From Lepidodermella squamata (taxonomy: Eukaryota; Animalia; Gastrotricha): a DNA stretch of 64,000 nucleotides. Below the pieces are notes generated by a model that was not told where the DNA came from, ran no database searches, and saw nothing but the letters and a program-made list of their open reading frames with translations. Below, piece by piece: positions 16,274 to 37,318 of this stretch (the first letter of the stretch is position 1; every line of letters starts with the position of its first letter). The stretch covers positions 2,232,001 through 2,296,000 of the forward strand of contig JBLDXI010000054.1 of NCBI GenBank assembly GCA_047495785.1, given 5' to 3'. Made by a program: the position numbers and the translations under genes.

Positions 16274-17403
16274 TCACGACCCAGTGTGACCAGGAACACA
16301 ATGCCATTCCCCGAGGTGATCACATTTCCACAAATAAACCGAACCATCGTCATGCGATGTAGCCAAAATTGTCCCAGTGGCATTCCAAGAAACGCACCAA
16401 ACTAGAAGATTATCATGACCACCAGACTCACGCATCGCGGCGTAATTTATCTCATAATTCTGACTAGGTGGAGCAGGTCCGAAGGAATTTCTTGGCGTTT
16501 GATCCGGGTTCTCACATGGGATAGATGGAGTTATATTCAAAATTGACAAGCGTTTGCCTCCTACGCCCAAAACGTGGAAACTACGACCAACTGATGGGGC
16601 AAAATCTATGTCATTGACCGGGTCGAAAATGGGACACACAACTTCAATCAATCTACAGAAATAACACTTAGTAACTCAATTGAGCTAGAGACATTAGATA
16701 TACCTAGTTAGTCGACGTGTATCGGTTGAATATGAGAATAATAAAACATATGATCCCTTTATCGATGATGTTGGCGTTGCTAATTGGGCCTCAGCCATTC
16801 CTGTTGCTAGCAAAGGTGGCAGCAGAATAGAAGTGCTCCAGGTTACACAAGACAGTCGACCTTGGATTTGCTGAGTATCCACAACGCTCATATGTCGAAC
16901 ATTAGGAGCATCAGCAGCTTCGTAAACGCGTAAAACTCCGTCAGTCGAAGCGGCGGCTAACATCAACCCCAGATGCTTAGGAGCAAAACGAATGTCGACA
17001 ACAGGTGTTTTCGCGTCAACAAGCTGGGTTCTCTTAGCCCACGTATGTCCAGATGATTGAGTTTGCATTTGGTCGGGTAATTCCTCCCAAATAGTAACAA
17101 CTTTATCAAAACTGCAGGTAGCTATGACTTGCCCAAAGTCAGGATGGGCCCAAGTAACCTTCCAAACAGCTCCTGAATGCGTAGAAACACTAGCAACTTT
17201 CTTCCACCGACCACCCTCATCCATATCCCAAATGCTAATCTGTAAGATCAATACTATCATTCAACTACAATAGCAGCAATAAGGCAACTGACTGAGTGGT
17301 CAGCAGATGCCGTAGCCATCCTGTTTCCATAGTAATTGTAAGCTACATCCAGCACAACGTCTTTGTGTCCAGAAGGCAAAGATGTCGCCGAACTCAAAGC
17401 CAT
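16274..17403 (-). CDS. SEH1L: Nucleoporin/GATOR2 subunit SEH1 (WD40), 3 exons
   Basis: HKDVVLDVAYNYYGNRMATASADHS, HSGAVWKVTWAHPDFGQVIATCSFD, FAPKHLGLMLA, FAPSVGRSFHVL, VSWNATGTILATS. Confidence 0.93.
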
Positions 17404-18967: not shown

Positions 18968-20046
18968 ATGACCGATTGGAAAGCCAAACAGGCTCAGAAA
19001 AAGCAAGCTATGAGCGATCTATTGGACGCTTTCAAATCGGGCACTGGACACAAGCTTTTTGATTTGCCGCAAGATATAAAGAAGCTCAAATTGGATGACT
19101 CAACCTACGTATCGCAGGAAATGTTGGAATATGTTTCTAAACAGTTTTTGGACTTGGAAGAATTGAATGTGGGTATCGAATATGACGACTATGCGCCGCG
19201 TTTGAATTTAGCCAATCTTTCCTTCCCGAAATTGACGAGCCTCTCTCTGAGATGCGTTGGAATAACTGCAATCGATTTCAAGAAAGAAAACTACCCAGCT
19301 TTGAAGAGCCTCACCTTTGATAACATTACTGGCCGAGTTGATTATTTCCACCTTGATCTTCCAACTTTGGAATCATTCTCGGCCGATTTCGTGACACTTG
19401 AAGACACGAATGACTTCTCTGCTTCGTTGAATCGCTGCCCTAATCTGAGGAGTTTTGGCACTTACAAGTTGTGGGGTCTTTCCGACACAAGAACCAAACA
19501 CAAGTTGATTCTCCCTAATTGTGAATACTTTGGCATTTATCGGTCAGGTGAAATAGCGGAAATTCTTGTAACATGCTGTGATATCGATATTTTTCAGATG
19601 ATGTGGAATTTCTCGAACTTTATGCACCAAAACTGACTGACTTGAATCTTCAAGCTTGTTACAGTAATTGCGCATTATTTTATTGTTTTCAAATGTGTAA
19701 TTCGTTTTTTTAAGGTTTGAAGCACATCCGCCTCGTCAATAAGCCTTTTAAAAACACTATCACTTGTTTCAATTGTCAGAAAAAAGACGGTTCTCTTAGC
19801 GATGGGGCCAAAATCGTGCTGAAAAAATGCACTAAGTGCAGAATGGCCGCCTACTGTTCAAAGAAATGCCAAGTCGAGCACGCGGAGCAACACAAAGCGT
19901 TCTGCGCCAAGTCTATCGAAGTCACTATTGTCAATGCTAACATTGGAAAATTGTCGATGGCCCATCTGAAGAAGCATCCTCGAGTCAAAAGTGTTACTGC
20001 CAATGACAGTGATGATGACGATAACATGTCAAACGGCAGTTTTTAA
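18968..20046 (+). CDS. LRR-like/zf-MYND protein, array copy A (3 exons)
   Basis: L..L.L repeats (FPKLTSLSL, YPALKSLTF, LPTLESF), family motif YKLWGL...YRSD...YAPKL..LNLQACY, MYND finger CFNC...CTKCRMAAYCSKKCQVEH..QHKAFC. Confidence 0.85.
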
Positions 20047-20169
20047 CCGATTTTATTCTTATGCCCATGATGATCTGAATTTTCTTCAATTTCGTTTTAA
20101 TCTTTCTTAAATTGTTACTCTTATTTGCCTATCTTGATCTAGGATTTTAATTTGTTGAAATTTTCCATA

Positions 20170-21221
20170 ATGGATGATTACGAGGCTAAGGAAGCTCAGC
20201 GGAAACAAGCTATCCAAGGAATTTTGGCCTCTTTCAAAACAGGCTCTGGGCACAAACTTTTCGATTTGCCTCGTGATACTAAAAAGCTTGTGTTGGACGA
20301 TACGACCTATGTTTCGCAAGACATGTTGGACTACGTCTCGAAGAATTTCTTGGAACTGGAAGAATTAGACGTCCGCATCGAGTATGACGACGATGCGCCG
20401 CAGTTGGAATTCAGCCAGCTGTTTTTCCCGAAATTACAGCGTCTATCTCTGCATTGTGTTGGAGTTAAGGCGATTGATTTTCAGAAAGACAACTACCCTG
20501 CTTTGAAACACCTTGGCTTTGACAATATCAATGATCGAATCGAGTATTTCCGTCTTGATCTGCCTACACTGGAGTCGTTTTCGGCTGATTTCATGACTCT
20601 TCTCAACTCAGATGATTTCTCAGCCTCGCTCAATCGTTGCACAAATTTGCGAACTTTCGGCGCCTATAAGTTATGGGGTCTTTCTGACACGAAGATCAAA
20701 CACAGATTAGTCCTTCCAAATTGCGAGAGTTTCAGTATCTATCGTTCAGGTAATTTATTCATATATTTTAGTGACTATCAAAATTCTTGATTCCGCGTTA
20801 GATGACATCGAATACCTTGAAATTTACGCTCCTAAGCTGCGAGGCTTGAACCTACAAGCTTGCTACAGTAAGTCGGGAATAATTATTGGAAATTAATTAA
20901 GTTGGATTTATAGGCCTGAAACACATTCGAATTGTTGATGAGCCGTTTGGCCGCCCTGTTGCTTGCTTCAATTGCAATAAGGAAGAGGGCAGTTCTGATG
21001 GCGAGGAAAAAATCCAGCTTAAAAAGTGCGAAAAATGCCTAATTGCTCAGTATTGCTCAACGGAATGCCAAGAAAAGCACTGGGAACAGCATGAAAAAAC
21101 CTGCGCCAAGTCCATTCGAGTCAGTGTTGTCAACGCAAGCCTCGGCAAAGCGTCAATGGCTCACCTGAAAAGTCACCCCAGAGTTTCGAAGATCGTCCGT
21201 CGAGATGAATTTATGTTCTGA
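20170..21221 (+). CDS. LRR-like/zf-MYND protein, copy B (3 exons; last exons absent from the ORF track)
   Basis: Close paralog of A. Last exon read by hand: KHIRIVDEPFGRPVACFNC...CEKCLIAQYCSTECQEKHWEQHEKTCAKSIRVSVVNA...HPRV. Confidence 0.85.
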
Positions 21222-21347
21222 TTTATGACATTGCTCAAAACTCATATTTTGAATTGTTTTTTTTGCCTGGATCTTTCTTGAAATAATTTTTTCGATATTT
21301 TTCTTATATTCCTTTATTTCTGCTTTTAGTCAAATAATTCAGGAAAA

Positions 21348-22294
21348 ATGAATAGAAAGCGCAAATGCGCGATCAAATATGGGGATTCTATTGAAAAATT
21401 CCCGAAACATTTGACATCTCTTGAACTGGACGATTCAATCGGCACAATATGTCAGGAAATGCTCGAATACGTCGAGGTTCATTTTCCGAATTTAGAACAG
21501 CTGAAACTCAAAACAGAACAGCGCGCTGAGGGGCCGATGCTCACCTTCAAGCATTTGTCTTTCCCGAAATTGCACTCTCTCACCATGGACATGATTCACC
21601 TAACTGCGATTCATTTTGACAAGGAAAACTACCCGAATTTAACAGACTTGCGTATCGAAAATTCTAGCGATATCGCGTATTTGCGCCTTGATCTTCCTTC
21701 GCTGAAAACGCTATCAATTGTGCACGTATGTTTGAAAGACTGTGGTGATTTCGCCCCGTCACTCAATAGATGCGTTAATTTGCTGAGATTTGACTGCTAT
21801 AAGCTAGGCGGCCTGTACCACCGCGTTCATCACATTTCGCTGCCGAACTGCACTTATTTCAGTTTGTATCGATCCGATGGCTTGGAATCGATCGAGCTAT
21901 ACGCTCCGAAATTAATCGATTTCGTTCTTCAAGCCTGCTATTGTAAGCTACTTAAAAACAAATTGAATGGAAGTTATTACTTGAGTTTTTAGTTCTTCAG
22001 CATGTTCGATTTGTTGATGAACCTTTCGGTCAGCCTATTTATTGTTTCCTATGCCGCCAGCCGGAGACGAAGCAGTCGCCTTTGGTGCAGTGTTCTCGCT
22101 GTAAATTTGCTCGATATTGCTCTGAAGAATGTCGAAAAGATGACTTGAAAAATCACAAAACGAACTGCGCTAAAACGGTTACTGTCAATTTGGTGAATGC
22201 TAATATCGATAAGGAATCGATGAGCCTACTTGAGAAGCATCCTCGGATTGGAAAGTTCCTCATTGATCCGGCATCTATCGGAATGGAATGTTGA
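21348..22294 (+). CDS. LRR-like/zf-MYND protein, copy C (2 exons)
   Basis: Same motifs; single intron after QACY; MYND CFLC...CSRCKFARYCSEEC...HKTNC. Confidence 0.85.
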
Positions 22295-22457
22295 CATCTG
22301 ATAATTTCGCGCTACTGATCTGATTTTTCATTGATTACGTTGTTTTGCATTCTCAACCGTTGGGCGGAAACTTGAAACAGCTTCGTTGATTTGCACGAAT
22401 ATTTCTTTTCTCCATTGATAGAACATAATTTGCAGAGTGGGCGAAGAAAACGAGGAC

Positions 22458-23593
22458 ATGAGCGATGTTTCTGGCGATGAAAGCGATGAAACGTCCTCAC
22501 AGCCAGAGAAACCCATCGAAGATTTTCCGAAAGATCTGACAGAGCTTGATTTGGACTACCAAACCGGCTATTCTCAGCATATTCTCGAATATATTTCCGG
22601 AAATTTCCCGAATTTGAAATCTCTCAATTGGGAGGTTGATTATGAAGATGATATGCCAAAGTTGTCTTTCGAAAATTTGCCATTTCCGAAATTGGAAACG
22701 ATAAAATTCAATGGAGTTCAACTCCACGCGATTCATTTTGAAAAGGAAAACTGCCCATGTTTGAAATCGATTACGCTTGAAAATGCTAGTCAAGTTGACT
22801 ATTTCCGCCTCGATTTACCAACCCTGGAATTTATGTCAATTCTATACACGGAAATTGAGGACAGCACCGGTTTTGGCCCATCGATTTCTCGCTGCACGAA
22901 TCTCAAGGCGTTTTTCAGCACCAAATTGTGGGGCATGGAGCGAGCTCTTCATAAGCTTTATCTACCGCAATGTACCGATATGAGCCTTTATCGATCCGAT
23001 GACCTTGTCGCAATCGAGCTCTACGCTCCGAAACTGACGAATTTGAGCCTTCAATCTTGCTTCCGTAAGCTTGCTGCCCTTTTTGCCATTTTTCTAAAAA
23101 TTCCAACCGGCTGAGAAATTTGAAAATTTTCTGCGACAATCTGTTTGAAACGCTCAACTTGAAAATTGAGAATTCGAATTAGGGGTACAATTTTCCAAAA
23201 TTTTCAATGCAAATAGTGCCCATATTTGAACCGTATCTTTGAAGGCTGATTATTTGCAGGATAATTTCAGCTATTTGAAATTTTGAAATTTAATCAGCAT
23301 TGCGACATATTCGACTGCTCGACAAGCCATTCGGTTGTCCAGTTGCTTGTTTCCGCTGCAAAAAGGAAGAAACCACTGAAACCCCGTTTCAAACATGTAG
23401 CCGCTGCAAAACTGCTCAGTAATGCTCAAAGGAATGCCAGGAAAAAGACCGGGGAGATCACAAACCGAACTGCGGTAGAAAAATGACGATCAATTTGGTC
23501 CATGTAAATATCGACGATGTTTCGCTGGCTCACTTGATGCAGCACCCTCGCGTTCGCAGGATTTGCCGCGACCCTGATGCCCCTGAATACTGA
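22458..23593 (+). pseudogene. LRR-like/zf-MYND copy D with one nonsense codon in the MYND finger
   Basis: Exon 1 intact. Exon 2 reads CFRC...CSRCKTAQ*CSKECQEKD...HPRVRRIC, with TAA at 23420-23422 where paralogs have Tyr; the frame otherwise continues to TGA 23593. Confidence 0.75.
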
Positions 23594-23780
23594 CTTCGAA
23601 TCAGTATTTTTCGTAATCTGGTGGAAAATTGACCCAATCTTTTCTTAGTTCTTCTTTCTTCATACTCCCAAAAATTTGCCATCGTTAACCCTAAAATGCA
23701 TTACTTTTATTTTATTTATTTGCTAGGTTATCCTTTAAAAAGCCATTAGCTAGGAATCACGAATGAGAGTGAGCGATTTT

Positions 23781-23985
23781 GGACCTATGCTATCGTTTCG
23801 GCTGGTTTCTTTTCCGAAATTGGAGACTCCCATAGTCAGCTGTATTATCTTCGATTCATTTCGAGAGCGATAACTATCCACATTTGAAGCCGATAACAAT
23901 CGAATTTGCTGTAAAAGTCGATCATATTCGCTTAGATTTCCCCAATCTCGAATGTCTCTCGATTCAACGAGTCAAACTGGGAGAT
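23781..23985 (+). pseudogene. LRR-MYND copy E, 5' relic
   Basis: Frameshifted PMLSF..VSFPKLE / IHFESDNYPHLKPITIE..VDHIRLDFPNLECLSI matching the LRR part of the paralogs. Confidence 0.7.
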
Positions 23986-23999
23986 CGGCCGAATTCGAG

Positions 24000-26900
24000 C
24001 CGAAACCGACCGATTTTAATCTGCGGGCTTGTTAAGGTAAGAGTTTTCTCATTTGTTTTTGTTTCCAATCCAAATCTTGGCAAATTTTGTTTTTGACGTA
24101 ATAAAGATTTACTGTAAGATCTCTGTAAACTACAAATAGAGTATCGGAAGGAAATTAACCATTTACGAAATTTTCTAATTCACCCATCGTGGCAATATAA
24201 TTTCTGGAGAAATAGAGATAAACCTCACCTCACAGAGGAAACCTAGCCTTGAATCTTTTTAATTGAACCCAGTCGCTAAAGCCCTGATCAATTCGATGGT
24301 AGAAATGGCAAAGCGAAGAGCAATTTATTTCTTGACGCAGATTGTAAAGTCTGAAGCTTATGTTGAGTTTAAGTAGCCAACTGAGAAAAACAATGGATTA
24401 AAACTTGAGACTTGAGAGAAACTATTTATATAAAACTGCGCCCTTCAGAGAGTCGGGTAGAGCGTCAATCGCGTTAAGATTCTTGAAATTTGCTGCAATC
24501 GTAACATCTTAAGCAAGCTGTTCGCAGGATTGAGCCGCTCTCCGGGCAGCGTCGTGGTAGGTGGAGATGCTGAATACGCGCTCAATCTCGGAAAACGAGG
24601 CCGGGAATGAGAAGGCCATTTGCGCCGATTGCGAAACCAGTGGATAGCTTGCGGCGTTTTTCCGCCTCCATTCGTACACCGGCTCGCAGTGGCCCCAGGA
24701 AATCCCCTTTCCACAAAATCATCCGCTGGCGGGACCAGCTCGTTCATTCTAGGTCAAGAGGTGCAGTGTAACCTTGAAATTATCCAATTCGTCAGTAGAA
24801 ACCGAGCTACAACAAATTTACAAGTTTGCAATAGAGCAATGGAATACTTGATTTCAAACGTTCAACGACTAATTGACCGACTATAGGCCAAGCATGAACA
24901 GTGTCCGGTTAGAAGGGAGACAGCACCAGTTTGTCCGCTGTGTTCACTAGTTACAAGGCAAGTGTTATTTGACTGGTCCAACTCGTAGCTGAAACTGGGT
25001 CGTATCGACCTCTAATATAGGACACAAATCGCAGCTTTGAATGCTAACATCCCTTTCGACTATCGGGCTCATTAACACGAGGCTTGATTGCTATGCAAAT
25101 ACGATTTCAAAAGGAGAAATAAGGCGTGTCCTCTTACATTTCCTGAAGTTGATAACGTCTTTCAAATCGAAAGAGGAAAATGACAAATAAGGATTAACAG
25201 TGCATCAGTGCAAATGAGTTCAGAATGCGTGTTGTAGTCAGCGATATCGATATTTTGCAACAGCGGCAGCGGTAAAAAAAATAAGCACGAGAAAATGATC
25301 GGAATGTAGCTGTTAAAATTCGCACATTTTCTTGGGCATTGACGAAATCGCAATTCAAAATGTCGTTGGTCCCGAAAGCCCTATCCGAATTCGATACGGT
25401 CAATGATTTGCAAATGGTAGCCATGAAGCCTACTTGGTCGTTGGATAAAAAGGCTACTGTCGGGGTGGATTTCTAAAGCTACGAGCAAAGTGCCGTGAAA
25501 GGCTTCGCCAATACGAGATGGGCGGTCGAGTCGGAATTCGTGAGGCGGTTAGAATTTGATTTCAAAATTGACATCGATTGCGCCTTTGAGGGCTGTGAAT
25601 TATGCTCGATCTAAATTGAATTTGTTAGCATTTCTATCCAAAAAATGAAGGTTTAATTACTTTTGCGTCAAACTTTCAACCGATGACTTCATTTCTTCCT
25701 TCGTCCGGCGTTCGCAGTGACGAATTTCTGCTTGTTAATTTGCCGGGTCTTCCTGTGATAATTTTTCACGCTAACTTCAAGCGCGAGGTAGTCAATGCTC
25801 TCATTTAAGGCGGTTTGATAACTTTCTCCATCTACATCGAACATCAATACTTCATTGCATTTGAGCGGAATTTTTCGGATGAGTTCTTTCTCGTGGTGCA
25901 GAATGATCGATAGCGTCATGGCGTCGAAATAAACAGGGTCCACGCGGCCGTCATGGCAAATGGGTTACAAGGCCTTCTGCATGAAGGAAATTCGGCTTCT
26001 CAGACGTGCGTAGCGAGTCGCATCTGTGCTAAAAAGTAAGCACTTCGAAGAGCTCCTGTGAATGTTTTTGAATGAACCGCCTCGTCCTGTGAATGAACCG
26101 CCTCGTCAGATTTTTGTGCTTTCCGCATTCTATTTCGCTGATTGCTCTAACGAGGACAAAGCAACCAGCGGCGGAGGGCTAACAATGCGCGAGTAAGACG
26201 GAGGGGAAAGCTCAGACGCCAATTGGGTTTTGACGCAAAAAAGTTCTGGGGCTCGGCGAATGCAAACAATGTTGGATCCACGTGCTTTGCCGTTCGGCTG
26301 CAATATCTTCAGCATAATTGAGTTCTATTTTTTCACCACAGAGTCGAGGTCTTTGCTGGTCAGATTATCGGCGGCAACGACATTTGAGTGGTTTTGCGAC
26401 ATAATTACGCTGATGAACGGTAATTACGGCTTTTGAAAGGCTTTGCGCTGGCTATAGTGGCGCGTAAAAGCAGAAGAGAATTATATAAATCGATGTGCTA
26501 GTTGTAATTCACCGTGGTCTTCGTCTTGAGATGCTGAGGCAATCCGTTGAGGAGGCGAGCCATGGTAGGGTGACGAGCGCCGCCTTAGCCACATCGAACT
26601 TGGCTGAAAAGCTGCTCGAGAGGGTCAAGCGAATGATTGCCAATTGGGGCGAGGTTGTTTTTTCGCGTGCCGAGGAAGCTGTAACAAGAATTTATGAGGA
26701 AGTAAATTGAATGAAATCGTAGGCGGATGGGCTTTTCAGGAGAAACGAAAGAGCTATCGTCGTGTACAAATCGGAATATCTAGAATAACAACGCAAACAA
26801 TTAGTTGTTAGTTCGCATTCGAAAAAGCAAGCGACGAAAAAGGATTAAAAGGATTAAAACGACCTTCTGGTTCTCGTGCTTGTCCACGTTCATCACCACG

Positions 26901-27230
26901 TGTGCCCAACACATCTGCTGCGCCATGCCTACCCGACCGGCACGTGGTCGCGGTCCAGGTCGCCCGCCGGAAAACTCAAGAAAATAAGTACTTGGTTCCA
27001 ATTTCGAGATTTTGTTCCAATTTCGATTAATAAAATACGTTGTGGCACTTCAACTTGATAGAGAGCGAATTCACTCATTTAGTTCACGCTTTTCGTTTCA
27101 AGTGGCATATGGCGTGTTAAAGTGGCGTTTTAAGGATTAAGTGACGATTTCATTTTATGTGACAGTTTCCAGATTTAAGTGACGCAATCAATTATGGCGA
27201 AGTGTTTCAATAATTCCTAAATGTTTAAAT
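24000..27230 (-). mobile_element. ~3.2 kb degraded insertion splitting copy E; carries RPA1-like OB-fold fragments (possible Helitron derivative)
   Basis: Lies between the two halves of copy E. Minus-strand fragments at 25160-25430 resemble the RPA70 C-terminal domain. Tandem duplication tgaatgaaccgcctcgtc at ~26070-26107; repeated aagtg(g/a)c near the right end. Ends not resolved. Confidence 0.4.
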
Positions 27231-27236
27231 TTTTAG

Positions 27237-27372
27237 GTCGATCTGCCAAACAATGAAAACAGACCAAAAGTTGCTGCTGGAATGTGGTCGTTGGGGAATA
27301 GCTCAATATTGCTCGGAAGAATGCCAGGAAAAAGATTGGATCGATCACCAGTCAAATTGCGCTGAGTCATTA
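27237..27372 (+). pseudogene. LRR-MYND copy E, 3' relic (degenerate MYND)
   Basis: LLECGRWGIAQYCSEECQEKDWIDHQSNCAES; one zinc-binding Cys has become Trp. Confidence 0.7.
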
Positions 27373-27555
27373 GGTGATTTATCCACCATCTGGCAGATGC
27401 GATTAGCGATTCAGGGGCTATACAATTTGTCGGAAAAAGGCCTTATCGTGTTGAAAATGTTTGCCACACCTTGAAATCAATCTGACTTGAACAGTGTTAT
27501 GTAAGTAATCGAAATATCTACCTACATTATTTTCATTTAATAGTCGATTTTTCAA

Positions 27556-28611
27556 ATGGTTGAGGAAGATGATGAGGCAAATTGGGAGGACGTTTCTGAC
27601 GATGAAAGTGATGTTACTCCATCGAAACCCATCGAATCGTTTCCCAAAAATTTGACCGAACTGGACCTGGATGAAGATACCGGCGCATCCCAGCGAATTC
27701 TCGAATATATCGCTGAAAATTTCCCGAATTTGAAGAAATTAAAATGGGAGATAAATTACGACGACGACCTTCCCAAGTTGTATTTTCAAAACTGCACGTT
27801 TCCGAAGCTCGAATCAATTTCGCTGAATTGTGTCCAGTTGAATACGATTCATTTCGAAAAGGACAATTATCCCCGTTTGAAATTTATTGAACTCGAAAAT
27901 GCGAGTCATGTCGAATATTTTCGCCTCGATTTGCCATCCCTGGAGATGCTTTCCATTCAATACTCAGAAATCGAAGATGGAACTGGTTTCGGCCCGTCGA
28001 TATCGCGTTGTACGAGTTTGAAATCGTTTTACAGCTACAAATTGTGGGGCCTTGAACGTGGCATTCACAAGCTGTATATGCCTGAATGCAAAAATGTGTG
28101 CATCTATCGTTCGGATACACTGGTTGCTGTCGAGTTTTATGCGCCGAAATTGACCACTCTAAGCCTTCAAGCTTGCTACTGTAGGTTTCCAATTTGATTG
28201 ACAATATTAAATCTACCTTAACTGAGAGTTCTCCTGTTATTTCCCAATATATGGCTATTATAAAAAAATTTGGAAATTTTAAATTTTAAATTAAATTTAT
28301 TAATTTTTTCCTTAGCTTTAAATCGCGTTCGCTTGCTCGAAGAGCCATTTGGGCGCTCCGTTTTGTGTTTTTGTTGCAAGAAAGAAGAGACTGATGAAAA
28401 CCCGCTGAAGAAATGTAGTCGCTGCAGAACTGCTCAATACTGCTCGATTGATTGCCAGAAAAAAGACTGGATGGCTCACAAATCGATGTGTGGCAAATCG
28501 CTCACTGTCAATTTGATTAATGCCAGCATTGATTCTGAGTCAGTAAAACAACTGAAACAACATCCTCGAGTAAAACGAATTTGTCGAAATCCAGAATCGG
28601 TTTATGACTAA
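27556..28611 (+). CDS. LRR-like/zf-MYND protein, copy F (exons 27556-28180, 28316-28611)
   Basis: Acidic N-terminus, LRR block, canonical MYND CFCC...CSRCRTAQYCSIDCQKKDWMAHKSMC. Confidence 0.88.
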
Positions 28612-29779
28612 GCCCGTTTTCATCTCCATACCTCCCGGCATTCATCCTTTTAATTTTAATTTTAATTTTCGATTATGATTCAGTTTTTACCTCGTGTACT
28701 TCGTGGCATGAAATGCATCGTGGAGTTTCGTTTTGGGAGGGACGGTTTGTTGTTTAATAATTTCATGAATCTCTCGCGTTCAGTTTTCAAGTATTTTGCA
28801 ATTTTTGTATCTTTTTGTTTAAAATTTAAATGTTTGCTTCTTCATAAATTAAGGCGTTGTTATTTCAAACCCTATTTCTTGTCTTTTAACCGCCTTAATT
28901 CTAATTGTCCTGAGTTTTTATGCCTCATAGTTTTTTGTTATTTCCTAATAGTTGTAATTTAATCGTCGAAATGAGCTACGAACTAAAAGCGAAAAACACG
29001 TGAGACGATTTTGGAACGAGAGCGACGGTAGTTGTGTCGAAAGTAGTGACGATTTTCGTCACGAAACTACGAAGCCGCTAAAAATTGCTCCGATGTTCTG
29101 TGCTGGTTGAAAGAGGTTGATCTACAAGCGTGCCATGGTAAGATTTCATGATATCAACATTTTTATACCTATAGGTATTATCTTGGTAAAAAATGAAGCT
29201 ATTTTATAGAATAATTCGAAGTGAAACCTAATAAACTATTTTATAATATAACCAGCAATCTGCCTCAAAAGTCATCACAATCTAAAAGCAGCCAACTACG
29301 TTAACATTAGCATAAGAGCCGATCTGAATGGCCAGTGGTGTGAGGATGCATCAAACGGGATTTGATGCAGTTGTCTAGTTGGGGCATAATCTTGGTATCA
29401 GAGGCGCCTTTAACCCACGGCATGGAGGACCATGATCATGAACTATGCTAGAGATGGGTTTAAAGTGGCGCATCGTATTCAAAGATTCGATCATTCTTCG
29501 GCCAACGCCTATCCCGGGGTTTTTTTTAAGGTGGGATTTGATGTAGTTCATGTTTTGTGTATTTGCAGCACAGAGGTTTTTTTCGTACCATTCTTTTCAT
29601 AATATTTCTGTGACTTGCGATATCCGGCACGCTAAAGCAAATCGTAAAACGCCTTGATTAAGTCAAACGCAAGCAGAAACATCAATCAAATTTTTCTTTA
29701 CTACTTTTCTCACCTCGCGCCTAAGCGCGGTTTAAAGCATCGAAGAAACCTAAGGGCGGTTCAAAGTTGTGACAATGAC

Positions 29780-31140
29780 AGTCAGCAACTGCTTGATCTC
29801 TTCAAGGAGTTTCTCGACATTCGAGTTAGCCCCGGTGTAGGGGGCGGAGGCGGCAGCGGCTGCTGCTGCTGACCAACTGGGGCCGGTGGCGGGGTCGGCG
29901 GCTCCAGGAATGGTGTAGTCGGAGGTAGCCGTTTAGCCGTCCCAGGCGTATGGTTGCCTTTGTAATTTGCGAGCGCCGCCTTAACCATCGAACATTGGGT
30001 AAACCTGTGCCCATGTTTCTGACACGCCGTACACCTATATAGTAAGTTAACAAATAAGACCCGGAGATTGGGAACATTTAAACACTTACAAAACCATTCG
30101 AGCGGAGGTTTGTTGGACCGATCCAAGTGCAAAATTTTATCGCCTAATTGATGACAACAACATCAAGTCCCAGTCGGGTACTACGGGTTCGGCGTTAGCA
30201 ATCTAAGATACGACTATTAGTTGGGCATAGTACAACTATAGGCTGCTGCTGTCCAGCGGCGGCGGCGGCTGGTGCTGGTGCTGAAATGCTACCGCCGGCG
30301 GCTCCAGGAACGGTGTAGTGGAAGGAAGCTGTTTAGCGGTCCGAGGCCATAAACTGAAAACGGAACTATAAACGTTCGAAAAATCACGAAAAGATGAAAA
30401 GTTAGAGAGCATGGTTAAGTGTCAGTCCATACTGTCAGTCCGCGCAGATAGCTAAAAACTCGAAGATCTGGCTTTTGCGATTTGTTGGTCATAAGGATTT
30501 AGCATACGGAACAGCGGACTTCTTTTTGGTCAAGGTTGCAAGGAGTCAAGGAGCACGTGGAGTTGGTAAAAAATGACCGCAGCGCATTTGAAGGTCCCAT
30601 CTACGAACGATCTCGTCGATTGAGCCATTATTACTAAACCGCAGTCGGTGAAGTAGACGACAAAAGGTCCTGGAACTTTGATACCTATCCCGAATCGAAA
30701 TAATTGCTTTCGAGTATTGAATCGATACAATTTAACCTTAGGTTCGCCAGTGCCGAGTTGTTCGAACCATTTCACGTGTCTCGTTCCAAAACAAATTTGA
30801 GCTGGGTAGCTTGCTAAGGCAATGATTGCATTGTTCTCTTATTTCAACATCGCGAGGCCACACAACACAGTAACCGTCGAATAATTCGGCGGTCTCAACC
30901 GCATCAATCGTTGGATGTGCGCGAGCGGTGATAGAAAAATGGGACATGACCTCGACGAACAGGGTATCTTTGTTCGGTTCGCAGTGATGTGCGTGAAATC
31001 TTTGTAGCCACTCAACATAAATGTCGCTGTTAGTGTAGCTTGAATCGGACAGCCTCGCTTTTTCTTGGACCTAACCTTCGGATCGGTCCATTTGCCCTTG
31101 AAAGTTATTTCTGGATGCATGAACTCACCTGCGGCATTTC
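29780..31140 (-). mobile_element. Degraded Mutator-like (MULE) transposase relic with downstream CCHC knuckle
   Basis: SFVDGTFKCAAVIFYQLHVL matches the MULE domain D-G-T-F...F-Y-Q-L motif. CTACQKHGHRFTQC is a CX2CX4HX4C knuckle. Frameshifted; ~50-bp direct repeat at 29897-29948 and 30297-30348. Confidence 0.7.
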
Positions 31141-31983
31141 AAGCCCCTAAAACAGTGATGTTTGCGGCCAAGACGAGCCGAGTCAATCGCATCTTTTCCA
31201 TCGAAAATCTGAAAACACAAAAAAATCCTGTTAATTAGCCAAAAAGAGGCGGACCGACGAGTAGCCAACAAATATATAAATGTTCTAGTAAAGCGAAGGT
31301 AAAGTTTAATTAAGGTGTTGGCCGAGGTTAAGGTGTTAACGAGCGATCTAGCGGCAAAGCAGGTATAAGTAGAAAATACGAGAAATTGTTATAAAAGAAT
31401 AAAAGAAAAAAGAAATTTAACAAAATTATACGAGAGGGGCGGCGCACGCGACCGCGAATCGCGTTTTCAATGGAGCGTGGCGGGACTACAACCTGTCACC
31501 GCCACAATTTCGAAATTATATAAAATTTGGAAAAAAAATTATATAAAGAAACCGGTTTCCAATACAATTTTGTTAATTTTTTATTAACACTTTTTAATTT
31601 TTAGCCTGAAGCATCTTCTCGTGCTCGGAGACCTGTTCGATAGCCCAACTTCGTGTTTCCATTGTAACATGGAAGAAACCGACAACTGCCACGCGAATTG
31701 AAAATGCGTCTAGAAAACGACAATGGCCATGAGTGCACATGTGGCAAAAGACTGGCTTTGCACCTGGCTTTTGCGGACATTGTGCTGCGTCGATGAATCA
31801 AGTGAATTGAAAACGCGAGTCAGCGAAATCCTCCGTGATTGTGAATTTTTTTATGATTTATGAAAGTATCGATTTCGATATTTCGAATTTATTTTTGACC
31901 TGAAAATAAATGAAAATAAATAATGAAAATTGTTATTTTTAGCCATATTTTACTTGATTAATAGGCTAAATTTTGCTTTTAAA

Positions 31984-34900
31984 ATGAGCAAACAAGCGAA
32001 GAGAAACAAGTTGAGTGACGTCTCTGGTGACGAAAGCGACGAGGGCAGTGATGAGAGCGAAAATTCTCCCTCAAAACCAACGGAATCAATTGAAAGCTAC
32101 CCGAAAGATCTGACTGAACTCGATATGGACAACTCAACCGGTGTTACCCAAGAATCGCTGGAATACGCGGCTGAGAATTTCAAAAATCTAAAAGTACTCA
32201 ATACCGGCATGGATTATGACGACGAAGCGCCGAAACTGACGTTCCAACACTTGTCATTCCCGAAATTGGAATCAATTTCTTTAGAGGGCGTTGGTGTAAC
32301 TGGGGTTCATTTCGAAAAAGACAATTATCCGTGTTTAAAATCGATTTCATTGGATAATATTGACGGCGATGTAGCCTATCTACGCCTTGACTTGCCGACC
32401 CTAGAATCGTTTTCCGCTCAACACGTCACGATTGAAGATAGCAATGATTTCGGGTCGTCCCTTTCGCGTTGTGTGAATCTCGAATATTTCGATTGCTACA
32501 AATTGTGGGGCCTGTCGTCGGCTAACTGCCACAAGTTGTACCTGCCTAATTGCTCACAGCTGGGTTTGTATCGGTCGGATGACCTTCGCGGCTTGGAAAT
32601 CTACGCGCCGAAATTGGAACATCTCAATCTTCAAGCTTGTTATGGTATAAAATTATATATTTTTTAATCTTAATCTTTTAATTAACTTTTTAATTTAATT
32701 TAATTAAGGGTGTCTCATTAGTAAGTGAGCCATAGACAGTACTGGGAGTAAAAAATATCTTAAAATCAGGGCGATTTCTTATTTTATAATTTGAGGGTAT
32801 GTATCTGGCCAAAGCCAATCAGGATTTATCGCCCATGATGCCACACAACTTGCATCTATGGCTAAATAAAGGGGTCTTCCTGTTACCGGAACCAAATTTA
32901 CAGTGAGCGGAACCAAATTTTAGAATTTTCTAGTGGCCTGAAACCGCTTTTTGGATATTTATTGCATGTCAAAATTGGCCCCAATTATTCTAGAAAATTC
33001 GCCAGTGCATTCAGCGCAACATTCTCTATAAGACGCAGTGTTCAATTCAGAATTCATGCTTAGCCTAAAATTCTTAGAAATATTCAAAAAATGACTCTTG
33101 GCATATTTCGAGTTTGGTTCCGCAAAAAGCAAATTTGGTTCCGCTACAGCATATTTGGTTCCGATAGAGCAAAGGACGAGGGTCGGTTATAGGCTAAGTC
33201 GGCCTACGGTGCAAATGGCTATTTCCAGTTTATTTATTTTTTAATTTTATAATTTTTCATAAAAAAGCGTGTTCTTCGAAAAAAATCCATCGCATCCTTT
33301 CTCTTTAATCAACTTTTTAAATTCTTATTGCCGGTGTTTTTGGATACGAACAGATAAGTCATCAAATAAAGACGTGTAGGCCGCCACGATGCAGTAAATT
33401 TTGTTGTCGTATTAACAATACCAAGCATCCTTTTCAAGGATGGGCTTATATATTTTTGTTGGAAAGCATGCAGCATGATTGTCTTCGACTTAGCAAACTG
33501 TCTTAGACTTGGCGCACGGGCCTTGTGACTAATACCACGAATAATACCACAAGGCACGGGCGCCCAGGGCGCGTTCGAATGCGCGCGCGCGGGGGTAGGC
33601 TATAATTATCTTGGTATGTTGCGTAATAAGCCCCAACCAATAGGAGCGCGCGCGCGGAGGAAACACCGGCGGGCCGGAAAATGTGCAATATTTTTAGATC
33701 AAAATGAGCGTCTCAACGAGAAGAATCTTATTATGCAAGAAAAAAATTAGGAAGTCAGGTCTGCTGGGGGTCAAATAGAGAAAAAACCGATTTGCGAAAA
33801 TCGCATGTTTTTCATTGAAATTTGAGGTTTTCCCAGTCATTTGACCTTGACATGAATTAATTTTTTTTATTTTTGAATTGGATTCCAAATAAGCTATATA
33901 TTTCAGTCTACCTAATAGCATGTTGAAATAAATAAATTTTTTGCCGCAGGAACACGCTAATGAATTTGATGAGTTTTGAGTCATGCGACCGGTTTTAACG
34001 TGAAATAGTATCAACTTTACCGAATTTTGTACCCGCTACCTGAGCGTTTCACCGCACCCGGATTTTTTCTATGATATATGACAGTCATTTCTTAATTATT
34101 AAAATTAGTTTTAAACAATTTTACACCTGGGGCGGATTTTACCTACTAACCGGTCCTCGTTCTTTGGTTCCGCTCACCGAAAACTTGGTTCCGCTAAAAG
34201 ATATTCCCCTAAATAATAGTGAGCTATTGCTGGAACACTGGGACACTGGAATCAACCGGAATACCTTGAAAAGCAATTTATTTATCATGGAACAAACTGA
34301 ATAATTACCATCAACTTCTTGAAAACCGGTACTTCGTCAAATTATCAAATTATTATTCCTTATTCCTTTCATTCCTCGACTTTCGTGATAGTCCACTCGC
34401 CACAAATGGCTGGACCAATCACCTTTGTTTTGCAGGCTGAATTTATAGCATGGGGTTACTTGTATTTGATGGAGAAAAGTGAACTTGACCTCTTTCCTTG
34501 CAGATTAGTTTCACAATCTTTTCATTGCGATACCGCACTATCATGTTGCAATGTTGATTAGCTACTATCGCATTGGCGATTCGAAGCCTTACAGCTTGAA
34601 CCAGTTCACCGCGGCTCGCGAAGCAGGCTTTTGAAGACATAATTACAACGATAAAACAGAAATGCAACGATAATTCAACTTCAGATGTTCAAATGTTGAG
34701 GTTCTTCACGTTTTTTCGAACGAATGCGAATTCATGTGGAAAATTTCGGCTAATGACAGACCTTCACTGAGAAACTTAGAATAAAGCTCAGCGATTCAGG
34801 GAAAATGAATAATGAAAAGCATTGAAACCTAGATAACTGGGCTTGACAGTGTAGAAATAATCCCATGGAGCGGTAGCCGTTTGAGCGGCGATTTCTTTTT

Positions 34901-37318
34901 GCTTCCTTGAAGAATCGAATTGGTCGTAGTTTAATGAAGTTTGAGTGGCATCATAACCGATGCTGCCTTTCTCAGCTGCCATATCAAAACCGCGCCGAAA
35001 TACTTGCTCTGAACTGGCGTGGTTTAATTTCTGGCAATGACTGAGGTCGAACAAAAGGTGTATATATTCGAGACGACGATTTGTTGGTAAAACTGGTCAT
35101 CTGTGTAGCGTTACTTGTAGATATTTATTGTAATGAGGTGAACAATATTGGTAATTTGGCAAAGCCCATACAACATTGCAGTTTAATGTAGCATGGTACA
35201 CTGATGGATACATGTTGGCTTCGGGATACATGAGAGTATCAACCGGGGCATTGCCTAGCTGGTTTAAGTTAAGGTTCGTTCGATTAGATGGATGTGGAGT
35301 TTCATTTCCCTCCATGACCGTGAACAAACCTGGGCTGCGTATGCAACTCGCATTTTTTGAGGGTCAGTCGAGTTAATGAAGATTGCGTGAACGTGATGCC
35401 GATTTACCCGCGGTATCATGCGTCACTGTTGCTTTTTGTCCCAATCGAATAGAGCTCGAATGAGGTCCCGACAGGTTGTTTTTGACGATTCGAATTTGAC
35501 AGGTTGCTGTGCACAAAGCAGGAAGAAATCGTACCATCATCAAACTATTTATTCATTTTAAGAATCATATAATCTCTAATACGTCGTCATGCAAAAGCTC
35601 CGAGATTGGTCGTAGTTAAATGAAATTTGAGTGTCATCAGAACCGCGAGCTTTTCTCAGCTGCTAACTCAAAACTGCGCCGAAATACTTGCTCTGAACTG
35701 TCGTGGTTTAGTTTCTGGCAATGACTGAAATCGAATAAGAAATGCAAATAATCGAGGCGACGATCTGTTGGTACTGGCCATTTGTGCTGCGAACTTGGGA
35801 TATTTATCTATTAGTGCGACTTTTTCGAATTTTTTGGAATCAGGTGAACAGTATAGATAATTTGGCAAAGCCCCTGAAACACTGCCGTTTGATGTAGCGT
35901 GGTACTCTGATGGAGACATGTTAGCTTCGGGATACATGAGGGAGCATTGTCTGATATGACGGGCTGGTTTAAATCAAGGTTCGTTTGACTTGATGGATAT
36001 GGGGCTTCATTTCTCTCCAAAATTCGAAAAGGCGTTATACGCAAAGAAATTAAGTCACCGCCATTGTCATCAAACTCAAAGTTCAACCGAATGACATGAC
36101 ACGTGTGACCTAGTGAATGTGAGTCTGCTTAATTATTCTATTCGTTTATCCATGCATAAAAGTGCTGCGCAACTTATCAACATGACCTGATTCATTTGAG
36201 CCACAACTCCAATGAGTAATCTTGTCGCAAAATGGCAAAAGGCTAGAAACACTATTCTACATCATTTAATTTATTTAATCATCATTATTTCTTCAGCTTC
36301 CCCTTCTTCTTTTTTATCTACCTAGTGATAATAGAAGAAAATGAGTTGAGAAGAAGAAATCAATCACTTGTTTGAATGAAACTCACAAGCCTTGCGGTAA
36401 AATCCCTCTCGCTTACAAACTCATATTGGTTTGCGTGGACGTTTGCGGCGTTTGCTCAGCCAGCTCGAGCGACCTGTTTCGGCGCTAAATTCAAAGAACA
36501 ACAAAAAAATTAGTAGCAAATTGATAATTTAGGATTTAATCTTCACAAGCCGTGGTGGGTAACCTATTGCCAGGCATCTGCAACGTCGCTACTGGTGGTC
36601 GCTCCATTTCCAAATCACCGATGATTTCGCCCCACATTGATTAGTTGAAGAGGATTAGCAGAGGCCGATTTGAGCTGCCGAGTTACTACGCTCAAGTATG
36701 ATTCGTAAGTGAAGGATAAATACTTGTACAGCGGGCCATGAGTGGCGATGTATTCAGCCAGTTCAAAGGATATGAACGTTGAAGGTCATTGCTTCGATTC
36801 CATACAGTCTTTCAGAGTGAGGGATTCATTTTTCGCAGTCAACTTTTTCTCGACCGGTGGATTAGGTCTCAGCGCTTGGTATTTATGCGTCATACAGGTT
36901 TTCAAGAAGCTTTACGTCATCTTTAGTGTTCCGACCTGCTTTCCGTCTATAGCTCAATCGTATAGGAAAGCTTTAAACTAGGGTGAAATTATAAGACATT
37001 TTTTAATAATTTTTAGGACTTGAACATGTGCGACTGGTGGAGGAACCATTTGGCCGCGCAATCGCTTGTTTCCGCTGTAAAAAGGACGAATCACCCGAAC
37101 AGCCGCTACAAAAATGCGGCCGTTGCAAAACAGCTCAATACTGCTCGCGAGAGTGCCAAGAAAAAGACTGGGATGACCACAAACCGCGCTGCGCCAAATC
37201 AATCACCGTAAATCTAGCCAATGCCAACATTGATCCCGTCTCGTTGAAGCATCTCAAGCAACACCCACGCATTAAAAAAATCAGCCGAAACCCCGACGCG
37301 TTGGGTTTGTTCATGTGA
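31984..37318 (+). CDS. LRR-like/zf-MYND protein, copy G; exons 31984-32644 and 37017-37318 separated by a 4.37 kb intron
   Basis: Exon 1 ends QACY-G|GT at the family intron position; exon 2 resumes in phase (LEHVRLVEEPFGRAIACFRC...CGRCKTAQYCSRECQEKDWDDHKPRC). Confidence 0.82.
32870..34210. mobile_element. Non-autonomous DNA transposon with imperfect ~47-bp terminal inverted repeats
   Basis: Left end AGGGG..tta(c)cggaaccaaatttacagtgagcggaaccaaa versus the reverse complement of the right end AGGGG..tta(g)cggaaccaagttttcggtgagcggaaccaaa. AAATAA flanks both sides; three more tttggttccg copies at ~33113-33163. Confidence 0.7.
34370..34640 (-). mobile_element. Relic MuDR/FAR1-type DNA-binding domain
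   Basis: FASRGELVQAVR...VKLICKERG...*INSACKTKV...GEWTITKV resembles the Mutator F.s..el..av...C...C...W.i.k pattern; in-frame stops present. Confidence 0.5.
34900..36030 (-). repeat. Two diverged ~420-bp direct repeats with coding-like content (~34910-35325 and ~35605-36025)
   Basis: Both translate to similar peptides: (G/R)NE(T/A)P(H/Y)PS..TNL.LNQ...MYPEANM.PS.YHAT.N..V..ALPNY.YCSP. Confidence 0.8.

Follow-up and report, generated by a model that had tools for sequence, protein, structure and literature searches.

We describe a tandem array of genes that each combine a leucine-rich repeat (LRR) domain with a MYND zinc finger, found in the genome sequence of a gastrotrich, Lepidodermella squamata. 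The stretch analyzed, hereafter the window, comprises 64,000 nucleotides of contig JBLDXI010000054.1 (positions 2,232,001 to 2,296,000, forward strand), and positions below are those of the window unless stated otherwise. Gene models were built from six-frame open reading frames (ORFs) and tblastn searches using the copies themselves, and their junctions were then checked for splice sites. The array, all of it on the forward strand, holds five intact genes (A, B, C, F, and G; 298–325 aa), a copy interrupted by a stop codon (D), a shattered copy (E), and an eighth, small remnant (Table 1). An original prediction made from the sequence had described seven co-oriented paralogs of roughly 300–330 aa with a YKLWGL/YRSD/YAPKL/QACY core, D carrying a nonsense codon and E broken into pieces; our models agree with that description and add the eighth remnant, and the array copies show YKLWGL, YRS(D), YAPKL, and QACY.

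All introns in the array are of the GT..AG type, and a phase-1 intron lies directly 3' of QACY in six of the six readable copies. The array also accounts for every copy of the family in this genome: when the 121.2-Mb, 151-contig assembly was searched with a family profile built only from outside proteins, the six array copies were retrieved at E-values of 4.5e-69 to 3.3e-54. The sole other match in the genome is weak and generic for LRRs (G000:C15:3365314-3365805, E 1.2e-5); it falls within a minus-strand open frame of 652 aa that probably encodes an unrelated LRR protein.

Table 1. Gene copies, remnants, repeats, and flanking genes of the LRR–MYND array, in window positions.
Feature	Positions	Strand	Remarks
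WD40-propeller gene	16694-17260	-	flanks the array
Gene A, intact, 325 aa	exons 18968-19547, 19598-19663, 19715-20046	+	open frame; GT..AG introns of 50 and 51 nt; MYND in last exon
Gene B, intact, 317 aa	exons 20170-20749, 20802-20867, 20914-21221	+	73% identity to A across LRR core
Gene C, intact, 298 aa	exons 21348-21942, 21993-22294	+	splice-site-checked model
Gene D	LRR exon 22458-23064, intact; last exon from 23298, readable to 23590	+	in-frame stop 23420-23422
Copy E, LRR remnant	23760-23988	+	two pieces in different frames (frameshift); profile positions 61-138 only
Insert splitting copy E	24000-27240, ~3.2 kb		dispersed-repeat fragments, 77-98% identical to other contigs
Copy E, last-exon remnant	27241-27372	+	second half of MYND finger; profile independent E-value (iE) 1.8e-14
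Gene F, intact, 306 aa	exons 27556-28180, 28316-28611	+	zf-MYND match; AlphaFold2 (AF2) model of LRR exon
Remnant of the start of a last exon	31606-31686	+	strand and first Cys pair, then stop; iE 3.3e-4 (3.4-kb search space)
Gene G, intact as modelled, ~320 aa	exons 31984-32644, 37017-37318	+	ATG 31984; donor GTATAA, acceptor TTTTAG
Multi-copy dispersed repeats within G intron	32884-34165		137 matches, 626 first-look candidates
Ferlin gene	from 37633	+	C2, FerB, C2; flanks the array

The MYND finger and its place in the LRR solenoid

Pfam searches and structure predictions were made exon by exon. The last exons match the zf-MYND model (PF01753) at 38.1 bits for A (1.6e-9) and 39.9 bits for F (4.3e-10), against a cut-off of 22.7, and regular-expression searches together with inspection show that all eight zinc ligands are kept, in C4-C2HC order and with canonical spacing, in A, B, C, F, and G. 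Among solved structures, the fingers of SMYD1-3, ETO/CBFA2T1, and DEAF1 come nearest. Against the curated Pfam models the LRR exons remain sub-threshold, the best scores being those of LRR_At5g56370, an F-box-associated model (24.4 bits), and LRR_4 (20.5 bits), with a cut-off of 27. AF2 modeling of the LRR exon of F gives a confident, beta-rich solenoid (predicted local distance difference test, pLDDT, 88.7; predicted template modeling score, pTM, 0.83), which has TM scores of 0.62-0.72 to assorted LRR clusters of a structure atlas. A Foldseek search of the same model against the PDB returned generic LRRs only, at E-values of at least 2e-3, and a feature search of the atlas was equally generic. 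The LRR-plus-MYND composition claimed in the original prediction is supported.

Also consistent with that prediction, which had seen no signal peptide, transmembrane segment, F-box, NACHT, or TIR domain, hydropathy analysis of the exons found no transmembrane segment or hydrophobic N-terminus (maximum Kyte-Doolittle 19-residue mean 1.12). Pfam found no F-box, NACHT, TIR, or death fold in any exon of the array, with no F-box even at E<=10, and no SET domain in any exon.

The finger is embedded in the LRR domain. Downstream of QACY, the window proteins continue with a strand (LxHVRL), the residues EPFG, the finger, and then ITVNLxNANID...LKxHPR, while in relatives without a finger a loop of 10-130 residues lies between the first strand and a second one (VNLxNANID...HL..HPR or VN..NT...GN..H.RC); in the closest relatives, the two strands are joined by about 10 ordinary residues. 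The nearest named relative, a protein of Leptophrys, was modeled with AF2 from a 79-sequence family alignment (pLDDT 91.4), and in this model the flanking strands are consecutive strands of the solenoid (residues 196-198 and 209-212), followed by a helix and a last strand. Residues 1-249 of the model align to the LRR structures of InlJ, the XopL LRR, and SDS22 at Z-scores of 16-17. Read onto this model, the MYND finger of the window proteins fills a naturally variable loop within the C-terminal portion of the solenoid. The finger and both of its flanking strands lie in one exon and so leave no signature of exon shuffling.

We did not find the internal-MYND arrangement elsewhere: it is absent from the best 150 of the 889 profile matches described below, from collections that apparently lack this species and its close kin, and a metagenome scan with the last exon gave 80 MYND loci, none of which has this LRR core within 3 kb. 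Full-text literature searches likewise returned nothing relevant on a family combining LRR and MYND.

A widespread LRR family

A word search with a single sequence, the LRR exon of F, gave no match, and an alignment of six LRR exons found three proteins. Profile searching of 1.84 billion cluster representatives then recovered 889 at E<=1e-3, of which 357 fall at E<=1e-10 and 71 at E<=1e-30, with E-values down to ~1e-54 for proteins outside the set used to build the profile. Named animal members come from the periwinkle Littorina saxatilis (two or more genes, located on a single chromosome; XP_070195959.1 and XP_070195965.1) and the hydrozoan Clytia; named green-algal members from Gonium (Gonium pectorale KXZ53461.1), Astrephomene (GFR46310.1), Tetradesmus (Tetradesmus obliquus WIA41948.1), and Enallax; and named members in Rhizaria from Leptophrys and Elphidium (EukProt Leptophrys vorax and Elphidium margaritaceum). 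Many further members lie on metagenome contigs. The named proteins are all labelled "hypothetical" or "uncharacterized", save one Gonium member that UniRef calls "F-box domain-containing", and Pfam holds no model specific to the family; a few relatives exceed the Pfam LRR cut-off. Motifs held in common across the family are EYDDD, FPxL, YKLWGL, YRSDDL, (Y/W)APKL, and LQACY.

These relatives have the same core motifs and the same terminal strand-loop-strand-helix unit as the window proteins, but they carry a plain loop where the window proteins carry MYND, and most have no other domain. As far as sequence comparison can tell, it is thus the architecture, with MYND inside an LRR loop, that is special here, and the LRR module is not lineage-specific. 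The original prediction of an undescribed family holds for the arrangement, which we did not find described, but not for the LRR module, which belongs to a widespread, if unnamed, eukaryotic family. The two Littorina proteins, P0004 (XP_070195959.1) and P0170 (XP_070195965.1), lie close in accession number, and their genes share one 111.8-Mb chromosome, so a mollusc too may carry tandem duplicates of the family.

Accessory domains are rare among the 116 relatives scanned with Pfam: MYND was found in two, in both cases N-terminal, and SAP, TFIIF-alpha, and ankyrin in one each. The two MYND-bearing relatives, P0002 and P0117, come from environmental assemblies and, like the window proteins, pair a finger (Pfam 1.4e-9 and 1.1e-7, respectively) with the same LRR core, but their finger is N-terminal and not in the C-terminal loop. 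P0002 falls in another part of the family tree, and the core match of P0117 is too short for placing. From their sequences, the two look like separate, independent MYND–LRR fusions, and that the pairing recurs in two relatives, both distant, is a hint that the modules have a functional affinity for each other. The P0002 gene itself is intronless (L008:10001-11071) and lies on a 998-kb environmental contig near genes for a Sel1-repeat kinase, a profilin, an OTU protease, and a DUF389 protein.

Among solved LRR structures, the family profile scores best against F-box proteins: DRC6/FBXL13 (1.8e-6), another F-box protein (6.3e-6), FBXL17 (1.4e-4), FBXL2 (1e-3), and TIR1 (4e-3). FBXL2, FBXL17, FBXL13/DRC6, and TIR1 have an LRR sequence type and a solenoid fold in common with the window proteins, but FBXL proteins carry an N-terminal, Skp1-binding F-box that the window proteins lack. 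By sequence type, then, the LRRs are of the F-box/FBXL kind, but the proteins of the array are not F-box proteins; we do not file them as FBXL members because no F-box was detected and because the spacers of 123-163 nt between copies are too small for an upstream exon. Signals for an F-box in relatives stayed below threshold and were rejected as grounds for membership.

This resemblance raises the question of whether the window proteins are substrate receptors of a ubiquitin ligase, in which MYND, in place of the F-box, would dock the FBXL-type LRR to the ligase or a co-factor. The ranking of the solved LRRs speaks for such a role, as do the F-box association of the best, sub-threshold Pfam LRR model, the UniRef label on the Gonium member, and weak F-box signals in two volvocine members (E 0.03 and 0.19) and a weak RING-like match in one relative. 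However, generic LRRs (TLR13, TLR4, and internalins) score nearly as well as the FBXL structures against the family profile, no F-box rises above threshold in any of the 116 relatives or in the window proteins, the spacers leave no space for an upstream exon that might encode one, and the tools used turned up nothing that connects MYND to cullin ligases. We regard a ligase role as unlikely but, given the FBXL-type repeats, as a serious alternative.

Age, selection, and state of the copies

In a maximum likelihood (ML) tree of 102 LRR cores, made with a quick search, the six readable copies group as a single clade, with a Shimodaira–Hasegawa-like approximate likelihood ratio test (SH-aLRT) value of 92, and branch as ((A,B),(C,(G,(D,F)))). 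Only A and B have a second phase-1 intron after YRS (19548-19597, 50 nt, and 20750-20801, 52 nt, respectively), giving each three coding exons; within one tandem array, either the A/B ancestor gained this intron or the ancestor of C, D, F, and G lost it.

The neighbors of the array in this tree are Rhizarian (Leptophrys and Elphidium) and metagenome proteins and not the mollusc genes, which, together with the patchy distribution of the family across animals, might suggest horizontal transfer from a protist or an alga followed by expansion. The support for this grouping is weak (SH-aLRT 80-81), though, and transcriptomes of predatory or benthic protists may include sequences of their prey. Moreover, the genes have host-style introns of 46-52 nt and sit between a WD40 gene and an animal-type ferlin gene on a contig of at least 2.3 Mb, and members on a mollusc chromosome and in a cnidarian fit vertical descent with loss equally well. 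Transfer is not needed to explain the data, and we consider it improbable.

Synonymous sites are saturated in 15 of 15 pairs, including A/B and D/F (proportions of synonymous differences, pS, 0.62-0.88; of non-synonymous differences, pN, 0.17-0.43). Since this saturation made Nei–Gojobori (NG86) synonymous distances incomputable for most pairs, we instead fitted an ML codon model by exon block, which gave global ratios of non-synonymous to synonymous substitution (omega) of 0.13-0.16 for the LRR block and 0.13-0.19 for the last exon, with tree lengths of about 9 substitutions per codon. Because synonymous sites are saturated and omega is this low, the duplicates are, judged from their substitutions, old and kept by purifying selection.

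A second result concerns a group of polar residues. Y161, K162, R185, and S186 (numbered as in F), which belong to adjacent C-terminal repeats, are conserved in 71-92% of family members; in the array, K162, R185, and S186 are invariant in six of six readable copies and Y161 is kept in five of six. Conservation of this patch across kingdoms argues for a conserved partner rather than changing ligands.

These data bear directly on the proposal that the array encodes a fast-turnover family of receptors for cytosolic recognition, with LRR faces that would diversify against ligands that change, such as those derived from pathogens. Tandem clustering and the presence of some dead copies are what such a proposal expects, and the original prediction had pointed to variable residues between the LRR leucines: solvent-facing strand positions are indeed slightly more variable than the rest (3.0 vs 2.35 residue types per column), but this is an ordinary LRR pattern. 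Against diversification stand the low global omega and the saturation of every pair, which leaves no young duplicate; the presence of only eight copies in the genome; the lack of NACHT, TIR, death-fold, or other signaling domains; the conservation of the polar patch from algae to animals; and the fact that the LRR module is ancient and usually present in single or few copies. Fast turnover and diversifying specificity, as first proposed, find no support in these values: as far as the global omega goes, purifying selection acts throughout, the very outcome that the original prediction had named as its refutation, and the suggested link to immunity falls with them, given also the conserved patch and the lack of signaling or death-fold domains. 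We judge a diversifying receptor quite improbable. Of the cytosolic two-part receptor initially envisaged, the intracellular character predicted from sequence and the pairing of LRR with MYND stand, but the diversifying sensor does not, and a two-site intracellular adaptor most likely fits the data better.

The broken copies differ in how far they have decayed. The only defect in D is its stop, which falls mid-finger after the fourth Cys, the piece past it still giving a weak zf-MYND match; a lone stop in a frame that is clean elsewhere must have arisen recently, be polymorphic, or reflect an error of assembly. The N-terminus of D is slightly shorter, beginning at an in-frame ATG at 22458; upstream (22437-22457), D has GTG at the position of the start ATG of F, with an AG acceptor-like site at about 22434. 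The finger remnant of E, 184 nt upstream of the start of F, matches Pfam zf-MYND over profile positions 8-39 (1.3e-8, 35.2 bits). The short remnant between F and G, which ends in a stop and lies about 300 nt upstream of G, probably represents an eighth copy, now dead.

Transposable element debris had been predicted between the copies, and dispersed repeats do occupy these gaps; those in the F–G spacer and in the intron of G recur elsewhere in the genome, and Pfam searches of ORFs in the inter-copy DNA gave no match. The intron of G, 4372 nt long, is filled with repeats. An element of ~290 nt (32884-33173) is found at 87-96% identity in at least 30 genomic places, its ends matching in opposite orientation in the manner of a miniature inverted-repeat transposable element (MITE), and it is followed by two elements of ~475 nt (33213-34165).

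That the array is mostly decaying, its "intact" copies being unexpressed relics or mis-modelled, especially G with exons drawn from different dead genes, is very improbable, for although three of the eight copies are broken and the intron of G is full of repeats behind a weak GTATAA donor, five copies keep their frames, splice sites, and eight zinc ligands despite saturation, which would be impossible without selection, and both exons of G are as low in non-synonymous divergence as those of the other copies.

Two further features of the copies were observed. The spacers from A to D (20047-20169, 21222-21347, and 22295-22457; 123, 126, and 163 nt) contain no AATAAA, and a pyrimidine run with an AG acceptor-like site lies 10-50 nt 5' of each ATG in A–D and likewise before F and G. 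Short spacers and AG sites of this kind fit the organization of a spliced-leader operon, which here would be an operon of paralogues. Past the last strand, the C-termini of B, C, and G (21200-21218, 22270-22291, and 37295-37315), and those of many relatives, run from a short acidic stretch into aromatic or hydrophobic residues, as in ..DP..G[ML]F, an ending that may be a conserved C-terminal tail motif.

A candidate two-site intracellular adaptor

Taken together, we think it probable that the array is a lineage-specific tandem expansion of a MYND-inserted, FBXL-type LRR gene that encodes an intracellular two-site adaptor. A MYND zinc finger would have been inserted, in an ancestral gene, into the variable loop that separates the last two strand-forming LRR repeats; the whole gene would then have been duplicated in tandem and its copies would have diverged under purifying selection, leaving five copies that work today, one that was stopped recently, and two wrecks. 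In the cytosol or the nucleus, where the proteins presumably reside, the LRR surface with its Tyr-Lys/Arg-Ser patch would hold one partner, and the MYND finger would dock a second protein through a proline-containing peptide, of the PxLxP type that MYND fingers bind. Partners or expression domains would long since have been divided among the paralogs.

Several points weigh against this reading. The Trp in the groove of the finger that is reported to contact the peptide in the ETO MYND-SMRT work is kept only in B, F, and G; in its place, A has Ala, C has Leu, and D has Arg. The placement of the conserved patch on the concave face comes from LRR register and DSSP strands only, and the position of the finger relative to that face from the model of a relative. 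Finally, the adaptor role is suggested by analogy.

Known MYND proteins offer partial parallels. The finger of the window proteins is closest in sequence to that of SMYD1-3, and in SMYD proteins the finger interrupts its host domain, a split SET, rather than being appended to it. The host domain in the window proteins is an LRR solenoid and not SET, and they have no catalytic domain; SMYD would thus serve as an analogy for the insertion only. ANKMY1/2, ZMYND12, and ZMYND10 combine a scaffold of ankyrin or tetratricopeptide (TPR) repeats with one MYND finger at an end. They provide a similar scaffold-plus-finger design in a small intracellular protein, and the only likeness in sequence that was seen is that of the finger.

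A broader scenario is possible, which we put forward tentatively. The LRR core may represent an ancient, unnamed adaptor family whose patch binds one universal partner, and to which different lineages repeatedly added docking modules (MYND at least twice, SAP, and possibly a degenerate F-box or RING); the gastrotrich array would then be one receptor, multiplied and re-targeted by an internal MYND finger.

The array opens no question of immunity. Its interest lies in Gastrotricha, a phylum with a gene content that has hardly been explored, and beyond it in the family to which its LRR module belongs. If the interpretation presented here is correct, the roughly 900 cluster representatives found in animals, green algae, Rhizaria, and eukaryotes of environmental samples would constitute a coherent LRR family without a Pfam model of its own or a descriptive name, and its unusually well-conserved polar patch would be a target for mutagenesis and for the hunt for binding partners. 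The gastrotrich genes themselves would offer a clean case of a domain that was inserted into a solenoid loop, fixed, duplicated, and kept by selection.

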